The notes under the pieces were generated by a model. That model made no database searches, was not told the origin of the DNA, and saw nothing but the letters and a program-made list of their open reading frames with translations. From Takakia lepidozioides (taxonomy: Eukaryota > Plantae > Bryophyta): a DNA stretch of 64,000 nt. The stretch spans positions 50,778,001 to 50,842,000 of the forward strand of contig CM060734.1 in assembly GCA_030704615.1 (NCBI GenBank), written 5' to 3'. Both the position numbers and the translations under genes were made by a program. This document shows, in pieces, positions 43,901-48,189 of this stretch. Position 1 is the stretch's first letter. Every line of letters starts with the position of its first letter.

Positions 43901-46900
43901 GTAATTGAGTCACCAGTTGAGCCAACAAGCCTGGTGTATCAATGTGCAGATCATCAGGGGAGCATGAGTCCTCAAGGCGTGTGAAGTCCGAGCTGCTGGT
44001 GCAGGTAGATGGTGTGAACAACACAGGCACAGCGGAGGGTGACAAGAAGATTGTCATGGTGTTGGCTGCCACCAACTTTCCCTGGGATATTGATGAGGCG
44101 CTCAGGTTGGGATGCCATATTCCCCACCTCCTCTTTGTGGAAGCCTGTCTCTTGGGGGGTGTCAAGGAAGCATTATGTTACAGGGATCAGTTGCGTTCAT
44201 TTTCTGAACTTGGTTTGCTCGGTACATTAGCTTGCTTTCAATATTTTGTGGGGCGCATTCACTGCCACTAAATTTTGAGTTAGAGCAACCTGGAGAGAAG
44301 TAGAACAAATCGAATTACTTAGGATTCCGACTGTTTGGTTATCGACCCTGTAGTTACAAAACTGCTTCAGCTCCAAAAACCACACATGGGCATAACAGTT
44401 GAGTGCATTCCATATGTTGTTTGGCCAGGAGGAGACTGGAAAAGCGGATCTACATTCCACTGCCAATGGAGCAAGGTCGGCGTGAATTGATACGCATCAA
44501 CCTGAAAGATGTTGAGGTCTCTCTCTCTCTCTGTCTCTCTCACTCAGTCTTGACCCTGCTGGATAAATCTGACTTAGAGGCTGTAGTGTCCTCAGCCATG
44601 TCTGTTGCCATGAGATTGTCTGATGAAAATGAAGTTAGGCAGAAAACTTCCCTGAACTTGTTTCCAGTCGTGACATGGGGGAGGACATCTTGGATGACCT
44701 CAAGGGTCTACCCACTCTCGGCACTAGACTGAAATTTAAACTCAGGGCAGGAAGCCTACCTTTGAACAGCAAACAGAAGCAGAGAGGAAAGGGAGAGTGC
44801 AATTGCCCGTTGTGTGGGCAATCTGAAGACAGTATTCATTTTCTGATACACTGTCCGGGGTTCTCTCACCAAAGAGACGCTCTCTTCAAATCTATTAAGG
44901 GAATTGTGCCTGTACCCCTGTTTACCAACTTTGAAAGTCTCGAGGCTGAGCCAAAAGCCCAGGCCCTCCTGAGGCCTAGTTTTTGGGCAAATCACACACA
45001 GCAGATTGATGCTTGTGTGAAGGGATTTCTAGAGGATATCTGGAAAACCCGGGTTAATTCTTTATATGGAGGTAAGTCTTACTACCAATGTCAGCCCCTG
45101 ACAGAGGTAGGTTCTGTCCCTTTTGTTCCCGCTCAAACTGGGCGCGGGGTCAATGGCCACAAGGCTACGGCAAACAACGTCTTATGAGTACAATCTCTCT
45201 CACTAAATTTTTCCACTGCAGAGAGATCAACTCTGAGGTCAAGAAAACCATGCTTTGTCGCGTTATTAGACCTGCCTTGAAGTACGCATCTGCAATATGG
45301 GTTGATAACGCTAAGTCTCTAGAATCCATTCAAGTGGGGGTGCTTAAGCAGTGTATGTCAGCATGCTCCAAAACAGCCAATGTGGCTGTTCGGGGTGAGT
45401 TTCACATCCCTTCCTTAAGCTCCCGACGAGATGAATTCAAGGTCAGATGGTGGGGTCAGCTGCAACATGTCCAACACCAGATATCCTAAGTTAATCAACT
45501 CTATATCTTGGAAACAGGACCACCCTGTCAAACAGGCTGAGTCCTGGCAGAAGAGAGTAGAAGAGATTCTCAAGGATCTGAATCTGAATCCGCAAGTCTT
45601 GACCCTGCTGGATAAATCTGACTTAGAGGCTGTAGTGTCCAAAGCCATGTCTGGTACCAGGAAAATGTCTGATGAAAATGAAGTTAGGCAGAAAACTTCC
45701 CTGAACTTGTTTCCAGTCTGTGACATGGGGGAGGACATCATGGATGACCTCAAGGGTCTACCCACTCACCTTTGAACAGCAAACAGAAGCAGAGAGGAAA
45801 GGGAGAGTGCAATTGCCCGTTGTGTGGGCAACCTGAAGACAATATTCTTTTCCTGATTCACTGTCCGGGGTTCTGTCACCAGTGAGACTCTCTCCTCAAA
45901 TCTATCAAGGGAATTGTGCATGTACCTCTGTTTACCAACTTTGAAAGTCTCGAGGCTGAGCCAAAAGCCCAGGCCCTTCTGGGGCCTCGTTATCGGGCAA
46001 ACCACACAAAGCAGATTGATGCTTGTGTGAAGGGATTTCTAGAGGATATTTCGAAAACCCGGATCAATGTTTTAAATCAAGGTAAGTCTTACTACTGCCG
46101 TCAGCCCCTGACAGAGGTGGGTTCTGTCCCTTTGTGTTCCGCTCAAACTGGGCGCGGGGTCAATGGCCACAAGGCTATGGCAAACAACGTCTTATGAGTA
46201 CATTCTCTCTCTGACCACAAGGCCACGGCAAACAACGTCATATGAGTACATTCTCTCTCTCTCTTTGTTTATATTAAGGTAAGTCTCCAAATCACACACA
46301 GCAGATTGATGCTTGTGTGAAGGGATTTCTAGAGGATATCTGGAAGACCCGGATTAATTCTATATATGATGGTAAGTCCTACTACCAACGTCAGCCCCTG
46401 ACAGAGGTAGGTTCTGTTCCTTTTGTTTCCGCTCAAACTGGGCGCGGGGTCAATGGCCACAAGGCTACGGCAAACAACGTCTTGTGAGTATATTAAGGTA
46501 AGTCCCACTGCCGGAGTGAGACCCTCACAAAGGTAGTGTCTGTTCCCTCATGTTCCGCCCAAATGGGCATGGGATCTATGGCTAATAATGTCTCTGAGTA
46601 CATTCTCTCTCTTTTCTCTCTCTCTCAGTTGGTGGTGCGGTCATACCAAGGCTACTACAGCAGATCCCCTCAAAACTCTGAAGTTAAACGCCTTTCAGTC
46701 GGAATAGTACTGGGATGGGTGACCTCCCGGGAAGTCCCGGTGCTGCACCCACACCTTTGGTTTACCAACTTTGAAAATTTCGAGGCTGAGCCAATAGCCC
46801 AGGCCCTTTTGGCGTCTAGTTTTTGGGCAAATCACACACAGCAGATTGATGTTTCTGTGAAGGGATTTCTTGAGGATATCTGGAAAACTCGGATCAATCG

Positions 46901-48189
46901 TGTTTCAAGGTAAGTCGTACTACCGGTGTCAGCCCCTGACAAAGGTAATTTCTGTCCCTTTGTGTTCCATTCAAACTGGGCATGGGGTCAATGGCCACAA
47001 AGCTACGGTACATTCTCTCTCAGTTGAATCACATGCCTAATACCCAAAAAAAAGGTGAGAAGATTTTCACATACCTGAGTATTAGGCAGAAGAACTGACC
47101 CTGCTAGATGAATTGACTTGGAGGCTGAAGTCAATGTTGTAGCACAAAGAATGTCCGAACAAAACAAAGTTAGGCAGTTGTGACATGGGTGAGGACCTTA
47201 AGAATGATCTCAAGGGCCCACCCGCCCACTGGGCATGAGACTGAAATTTGAACTCAGGGCGCGGAGTCTACCTTTGAACAGTAAACAGATGTACAGAGGA
47301 AAGCGAGATTGTCAATGCCCAATGTGCGGCGGCCTGAAAATATCCATTTTCAGCTACAATGTCCGGGGTATCCTCATCAGAGAGCGACCCTATCCAGGAC
47401 CATCAAGAACGTAATCCCTGCACCTCTGTTCACCAACTTTCGACATCTAGAGGATGAGCGTAAGGCCCTGCCCATGTTGGGGTCTAATTGATGGGCAGCT
47501 CACACACAGCAGATTGATGCTTTTGTGAAGGAATTTCTAGAAGAAATCTGGAAAACCTGAACAAATTGTCTATATCGATGTAGGTCCCACTATCAGATTG
47601 AGCCCCTCACGAAGGTAATTTCTGTTCCCTCTTGTTGCGCCCAAGCTGGGTGCAGGGTCTATGGCAGAAGGCTTCGGCAAACGATGTCGTATGAGTACAT
47701 TTTCTTAATTGGTAGAGTGAAGCGCTGTGTAATGTCATGCCAATCTTCTGGCAGATTGGATCCTCATTTTGAATTCATGATATCATGCTAAGATAACTCC
47801 ATCTAGTCTCTTCATGTGAACATATATTTTCTTGCATAGGCTATTGGGACAGTGCAAGGGTGCATTGTATTCCTTGCTGATAGGAATGGGTGAGTGTGCA
47901 TATGGAACAGATAGCCAAGGATGTGGATGTGGAAGAGCTAGCCAAGCGCACTGATGGTTACAGTGGCGATGACCTTACCAACATATGTAGGGATGCGTCG
48001 ATGAATGGCATGAGACGCAAAATTGCTGGCAAGACTCCCGATGAAATTAAGAACATGACCAAGGACGAAATGTATGACCCTGTGGCCATGCGCGACTTTG
48101 AGGAAGCACTCTCCAAGATTTCTCGAAGTGTCTCTTCAGCAGATATTGATCGCCATGAGAGGTGGCTTCAGGAGTTCGGGTCTGCTTAG
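40935..48189 (+). CDS. KTN1: Katanin p60 ATPase-containing subunit A1
   Basis: Exons 40935-41053, 41781-42339, 42742-42951, 43183-43427, 43950-44105, 44429-44516, 47911-48189. MIT N-terminus [15 protein letters not shown], Walker A GPPGTGKT, Walker [33 protein letters not shown], Vps4_C end WLQEFGSA*. Confidence 0.97.
41095..41120. repeat. (GT)n microsatellite in katanin intron 1
   Basis: About 13 GT units. Confidence 0.9.
44545..47701 (+). mobile_element. Head-to-tail and nested array of at least 7 LINE family A units filling katanin intron 6
   Basis: Units: 44545-45193 (TSD TCTCTCTCACT), about 45215-46204, 46213-46252, 46265-46604 with nested 46286-46488 (TSD TATATTAAGGTAAGTC), 46632-47013 (5S chimera), about 47045-47701. 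CCHC finger [17 protein letters not shown]; ORF ends [13 protein letters not shown]. Confidence 0.92.
46633..46751 (+). rRNA. 5S: Full-length 5S rRNA retrocopy (head of a 5S-LINE chimera; probably non-functional as rRNA)
   Basis: 119 nt TGGTGCGGTCATACCAAGGCTACTACA...AGTACTGGGATGGGTGACCTCCCGGGAAGTCCCGGTGCTGCACCCA, a bryophyte-type 5S. About 7 substitutions vs the recalled consensus, including A-box AGTTAAAC; no oligo-T terminator. Confidence 0.93.

Follow-up and report, generated by a model that had tools for sequence, protein, structure and literature searches.

A 5S rRNA–LINE chimera framed by a single target-site duplication in a katanin intron of Takakia lepidozioides: a probable one-off template-switch product

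A 64-kb stretch of the genome of the moss Takakia lepidozioides (GenBank assembly GCA_030704615.1, contig CM060734.1, positions 50,778,001–50,842,000 of the forward strand; the whole of this stretch is referred to as the window, and all positions are given in its coordinates) contains a composite retroelement in which a full-length copy of 5S ribosomal RNA (rRNA) is joined to the 3' end of a long interspersed nuclear element (LINE), designated LINE A, both parts lying within one 13-bp target-site duplication. The unit is best read as a single, non-propagating chimeric retrocopy, generated when a reverse transcriptase copying LINE RNA switched to 5S rRNA (estimated probability roughly 0.65), and the locus, an intronic insertion, is old, inert and devoid of any evident function. 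An earlier reading of this DNA (the original prediction) had offered two origins, namely a family of 5S-headed short interspersed nuclear elements (SINEs) of the SINE3 type, or a one-off template switch. The latter is now favoured by the uniqueness of the unit in the window, the depth of only some two to three copies at which its diagnostic letters occur, the equal decay of its two halves, and the presence of T4 and T5 runs in its tail, and the family is thereby disfavoured rather than refuted.

Anatomy of the chimeric unit

The head of the unit (46633–46751, + strand) is a decayed but full-length 5S rRNA retrocopy, for which a match to the complete Rfam model RF00001 (78.5 bits, the gathering score being 38; model positions 1–120 of 120, not truncated) bears out the earlier claim of an entire 5S sequence. 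Direct reading finds neither a T run nor a spacer immediately 3' of this head, in agreement with the original prediction that no terminator follows it. Since the 5S is whole, in sense orientation, and free of terminator and spacer, it derives from the mature RNA and not from a 5S gene. A functional 5S rRNA gene was also considered at this position and rejected, the copy being solitary, with no T run behind it and with about six non-standard helix pairs. No second 5S was detected elsewhere in the 64 kb by an Rfam scan that included permissive settings, and ARAGORN together with the permissive Rfam scan returned no tRNA and no further Rfam small-RNA family in the window.

The state of the head was assessed against contigs of public sequencing runs matching 45900–47700 at 80% likeness, a set dominated by LINE and rDNA contigs, and all contig results below refer to the contigs listed. 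Contigs from a DNA run place at least five differences between the head and the majority 5S of the organism, at 46673, 46688, 46696, 46697 and 46699, corresponding to 5S positions 41, 56, 64, 65 and 67. Four of the five (56, 64, 65 and 67) fall within or next to box A and the intermediate element, and these changes may have been made after insertion. Box C (5S positions 80–97), which had been described as intact, indeed shows no listed difference from the majority sequence. The substituted sites account for most of the approximately six helix pairs flagged as non-standard in the Rfam alignment. A single additional G (46632, +) stands between the left repeat and the first base of the 5S, and is probably an untemplated addition by the reverse transcriptase upon reaching the 5' end of the RNA.

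The tail (46752–47013, +) is a 5'-truncated LINE A 3' end of 262 bases, sharing 84–89% identity with the LINE A 3' ends at 44920–45170, 45930–46180, 46288–46470 and, on the minus strand, 31215–30970, so that the proposed attachment of the 5S to the last ~260 nt of LINE A holds. It consists entirely of C-terminal coding sequence from the last open reading frame (ORF) of the LINE and a folded 3' module, the stop codon of this ORF being located 8 nt upstream of the TC run. All LINE A copies terminate in ...GAGTACAT followed by a short TC run, and the chimera tail likewise extends to the true LINE terminus (TACAT and the TC run, as in all copies); according to the alignment it lacks 18 nt that canonical copies carry immediately before the terminal TACAT. 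Conserved hairpins occupy the last ~115 nt of LINE A, three of their pairs being maintained by changes on both sides (for instance, a GTCAG/CTGAC stem converted to GTGAG/CTCAC), and these hairpins are retained in the chimera (46899–47013). Two LINE A copies have independently lost the segment separating the last hairpin from the terminal GAGTACAT.

A single duplication encloses both parts, and none is found between the 5S and the LINE. The duplicated 13-mer occurs exactly twice in the 64 kb, even when one mismatch is tolerated, and these two occurrences (46619–46631 and 47014–47026, both +) frame the unit exactly, substantiating the perfect 13-bp flanking duplication of the original prediction. 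Shuffles gave an expectation of 0.22 matches, and two matches were reached in 4 of 100 shuffles. Eight of the 13 duplicated bases belong to a TC run indistinguishable from LINE A's own 3' tail, and because LINE A copies all end in such a run, only the final five bases (AGTTG) are unambiguously target DNA. Exact contigs extend across both outer boundaries, spanning 46523–46727 (left repeat into the 5S) and 46973–47210 (right repeat into the flank), at the single-copy depths of 25.8 and 33.8, respectively. The unit was inserted into the TC tail of U5 (46491–46603, +), an older LINE A copy that consists of a tail only, matches the LINE A 3' module, ends in GAGTACAT at 46596–46603, and continues into a TC-rich microsatellite tail (46604–46626, +) whose last 8 bases begin the left repeat. 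The expected pre-insertion site is a TC run followed by AGTTGAATC.

At the joint, the 5S is fused directly to the LINE 3' end with nothing intervening. Alignment of the chimera with six LINE copies confines the joint zone to 46747–46753 (+), where a microhomology of 0–4 nt (ACCC) is possible, and this seven-copy alignment shows the LINE part to start no later than 46754. One LINE copy (54245–54545) is identical to the chimera at ten bases across the joint. If the source RNA carried the variant of this copy, the nascent complementary DNA (cDNA) would have ended in bases able to pair with the final four of the 5S (ACCC), and a jump onto the 3' end of an RNA requires just such pairing. The microhomology suggested by the original prediction therefore survives as a possibility of 0–4 nt, with its source reassigned, the best natural match being the copy at 54245–54545 and not that at 47417.

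A LINE array in the katanin intron and a proposed route of formation

The chimera is embedded in an array (44545–47700, +) of LINE A and LINE A-like copies, all 5'-truncated and arranged head to tail, as delineated by repeat families D1–D8 and a tblastn map. This 3.2-kb, sense-strand array fills almost all of the last intron of a katanin p60-like gene (41710–48190, +), whose MIT and AAA domains are encoded in ORFs at 41710–43590. The intron occupies approximately 44517–47907 (3.4 kb), between an exon end near 44518 and a last exon at ~47.9–48.19 kb. One array copy (44545–45193) possesses an 11-bp TC-led duplication of its own (44534–44544 and 45194–45204). Head-to-tail LINE A copies are seen at 44534–45204, 46200–46605, 54052–54160 and, on the minus strand, 14950–15030, each copy beginning within the TC tail of its predecessor or immediately behind it; among them are tail-only pieces measuring 39 and 113 nt. 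At one LINE–LINE joint (46485–46493) there is no intervening TC run. Head-to-tail joints of this kind suggest TC-run targeting or serial template jumps. We infer that LINE A primes where a nicked (GA)n end pairs with the (UC)n end of its RNA; in the case of L1, it is the poly(A) that pairs with T-rich targets. Priming of LINE A at TC runs would therefore explain both the arrays and the TC-led form of the duplications.

The arrangement of the unit presents the features associated with a template switch, a small-RNA copy located 5' of the LINE part, on the same strand, and reaching the RNA's own 5' end. From the parts and their order, the duplication, the equal decay of the halves and the insertion of LINE copies at TC runs, all of which are observed, the switch and a sequence of steps may be reconstructed as follows. 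The LINE A protein would have made a nick in the katanin intron, within the TC-rich tail that an older LINE A copy had left there, and the (GA)n end of the nicked strand would have paired with the (UC)n 3' end of LINE A RNA, allowing the last ~260–280 nt of this RNA to be reverse transcribed. A jump of the enzyme onto the 3' end of mature 5S rRNA would have followed, perhaps steered by a complementarity of up to 4 nt; the 5S would then have been copied to its first base, where one G would have been added. Joining of the cDNA to the top strand would have created the 13-bp duplication, and from then on both halves would have decayed together by ~4%. Twin priming was rejected as a description of the unit, both parts being in one orientation.

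The decay itself provides a measure of relative age. The head diverges from the majority 5S by at least 4.2% (at least 5 of 119 positions), and the tail carries 11 private substitutions in 251 alignment columns (4.4%), as many as its sister copies, with changes in both halves being mostly C>T or G>A. Head and tail are thus of the same age. Equal decay further implies that the head was still a plain 5S when the unit originated, and not the already diverged head of an old SINE master.

One-off retrocopy or 5S-headed SINE

The best-surviving alternative, nonetheless unlikely, is that the unit is a member of a true 5S-headed, SINE3-like family, transcribed by RNA polymerase III (Pol III) from the internal promoter of the 5S and mobilised by LINE A through their common 3' module. 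In its favour, the SINE3 layout is complete, since a 5S head, its box C unaltered, is followed by a partner-LINE tail that folds and ends in a TC run, and a duplication flanks the unit. Against it, no second copy of the junction is present in the 64-kb window despite some 12 LINE A tails, and the divergence of the head from 5S does not exceed that of the tail from LINE A. The tail also contains a T4 run (46807–46810) and a T5 run (46820–46824), both on the + strand, beginning 56 and 69 nt past the 5S, respectively. Runs of this kind act as Pol III stop signals, and by its sequence a Pol III transcript of the unit would end at the T5, 190 nt before the LINE terminus. The T5 is common to the LINE copy U1, and is therefore probably older than the fusion, so that the obstacle to transcription would have been there from the start.

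Contig depth points in the same direction. Contigs bearing non-majority letters at the diagnostic positions of the head reach a summed depth of 66–97 as compared with 26–35 for single-copy contigs, that is, about two to three single-copy equivalents with the chimera locus included, although these are depths of assembled contigs, from which true copy number, transcript start and strand are not readable. Diagnostic letters at such depths indicate that the chimera locus has not seeded a sizeable family. In two further runs, presumed to be of RNA, every contig at 46696–46699 shows the majority letters and none has those of the chimera, a result that gives no sign of expression of this copy and speaks against a transcribed family, even though contigs cannot prove absence. 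As an observation apart, summed contig depth amounts to ~12,500 over the 5S and to several hundred thousand in LINE tail bins, against ~30 for single-copy sequence; these values are not copy numbers, and the 5S and LINE tail repeats are both clearly very abundant.

Two wider searches addressed the joint. A 21-nt sequence across it had no match in metagenome contigs, a blank devoid of weight since the 20-nt 3' end of the organism's own 5S was equally without a match, from which it follows that the organism is absent from that collection. A protein word search with the reading frame running through the 5S into the LINE (46536–46913), in a collection that does not hold the query's own ORF, yielded 35 matches, none of them spanning the junction; all 35 come from translated 5S genes in other organisms and part from the query immediately beyond the 5S. 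Given that collection, the result does not count as evidence of absence.

Several points weigh against a one-off template switch. The absence of a second junction copy pertains to the 64-kb window only. At its birth, the unit had all the parts of a SINE3 element, namely box C, the folded LINE 3' module and the TC tail. The tail is overall nearest to LINE copies that lack the junction-matching variant, and the microhomology that could have guided the jump is therefore uncertain, between 0 and 4 nt. Finally, the 5S/LINE joint is spanned by none of the contigs listed, so that it is the assembly by itself that vouches for it. A broader proposal would have the genome hold one or more 5S-headed SINE lineages, born from such chimeras and mobilised by a TC-tailed, structure-dependent LINE, with the present locus as one old member; this must be regarded as a slim prospect.

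A further explanation, also carrying only a small chance of being correct, transfers the fusion to the RNA level. Here 5S rRNA would have been ligated or trans-spliced to a fragment of LINE A RNA, and the enzyme would have copied the resulting chimera in a single run, never changing template. Such a product would not differ from that observed, and RNA ligation is one route proposed for U6/L1 chimeras (bioRxiv 10.1101/2025.02.02.635956). The possible terminal microhomology and the many LINE–LINE joints of the array are in better agreement with an enzyme that jumps. Least tenable, and very improbable, is an assembly artefact or a DNA-level rearrangement uniting a 5S gene fragment with a LINE tail, which could draw on the lack of spanning contigs among those listed and on the repetitive nature of both halves, but is opposed by a 5S of exactly full length with neither spacer nor terminator, by the 13-bp duplication framing the unit, and by the exact, single-copy-depth contigs that cross both outer boundaries and carry copy-specific 5S letters.

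Known systems, LINE A and other features of the window

Read as a template-switch product, the unit resembles chimeras described in two other settings. Mammalian L1 generates bipartite chimeric retrocopies of U6, 5S, U3 and other RNAs, each of them described as unique and non-propagating (bioRxiv 10.1101/2025.02.02.635956), and the MGL LINE of Magnaporthe gives rise to WEIRD/MGL ('MINE') products, which are flanked by direct repeats and whose LINE parts vary in length (PMC2104539). In these systems every locus represents an independent event. Common to these and to the present case are a small-RNA copy positioned 5' of a 5'-truncated LINE end, no intervening tail, and one duplication. The differences are that the host here is a moss-type plant, that the 3' end of LINE A is a folded module with a TC microsatellite rather than the poly(A) of L1, and that the 5S has its full length and lies in sense, in contrast to human 5S/L1 chimeras, most of which are truncated and antisense (bioRxiv 10.1101/2025.02.02.635956). 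No report of small-RNA/LINE chimeras in plants was found in the literature.

Fish, mammals, reptiles and insects are known to carry SINEs of 5S origin (PMC10946416; PMC10886601), and a 2024 review lists plants as having no known 5S-derived SINE and as possessing instead the Cassandra elements, miniature retrotransposons with terminal repeats (TRIMs) (PMC10946416). With SINE3 elements (zebrafish SINE3, HaSE3, MEG-RS and 5S-Sauria) the chimera shares a 5S-derived head that retains box C of the internal Pol III promoter, the 3' tail of a partner LINE, and a duplication. SINE3 families, in contrast, are multi-copy, with a fixed joint between head and body and with heads diverged from 5S, whereas here one copy is seen in the 64-kb window, and the head has decayed to the same extent as the tail, which itself contains Pol III stops. 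The likeness to Cassandra TRIMs is confined to the presence of 5S-derived sequence inside a plant retroelement; those elements carry 5S in both long terminal repeats (LTRs), and the present unit has a single 5S and a LINE tail but no paired LTRs. A Cassandra TRIM was accordingly rejected as an identification, given the single 5S in 64 kb and no flanking pair of long direct repeats.

Fusions between a small RNA and a LINE tail are regarded as the starting material for new SINEs. Should 5S/LINE fusions prove recurrent in the moss, plant LINE reverse transcriptases would yield the same template-switch products as mammalian L1 and the fungal LINE, and such recurrent fusions would constitute a natural series for asking why none became a SINE. 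Candidate explanations for this failure to take off are the Pol III stops within the unit and the lack of promoter elements upstream of it. If, on the other hand, a 5S-headed SINE lineage does exist in this genome, it would be the first SINE3 in plants.

As to the affiliation of LINE A itself, Pfam produced no match in its C-terminal ORFs, for which a protein atlas yields only a faint zf-RVT lead, and by tblastn the LINE A C-terminus has no similarity to the RNase H-bearing LINE at ~59.5–61.9 kb. A reverse transcriptase fragment of a related copy (18463–19067, minus strand) matches RVT_1 with a sub-threshold 25.5 bits, and its relatives are a few distant algal proteins, with identities of at best 47% to proteins of Ectocarpus and Myrmecia. 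The C-terminal region of LINE A, present at 45196–46198 and 44529–45184 (both +), runs through three successive frames with identical shifts in both copies, in the order of a part resembling the reverse transcriptase thumb, a middle part shifted by +1, and a CCHC part. The 5'-truncated LINE copy with reverse transcriptase motifs at 18463–19067 (–) adjoins the exons of a kinase-like gene (19276–20425, –).

Elsewhere in the window, a simple repeat (20941–21029) matches the Rfam families mir-297 and mir-466 below threshold on either strand, probably owing to its composition, and an uninterrupted ORF of 429 amino acids (22954–24243, –) encodes a protein of glycosyl hydrolase family 17 (beta-1,3-glucanase).

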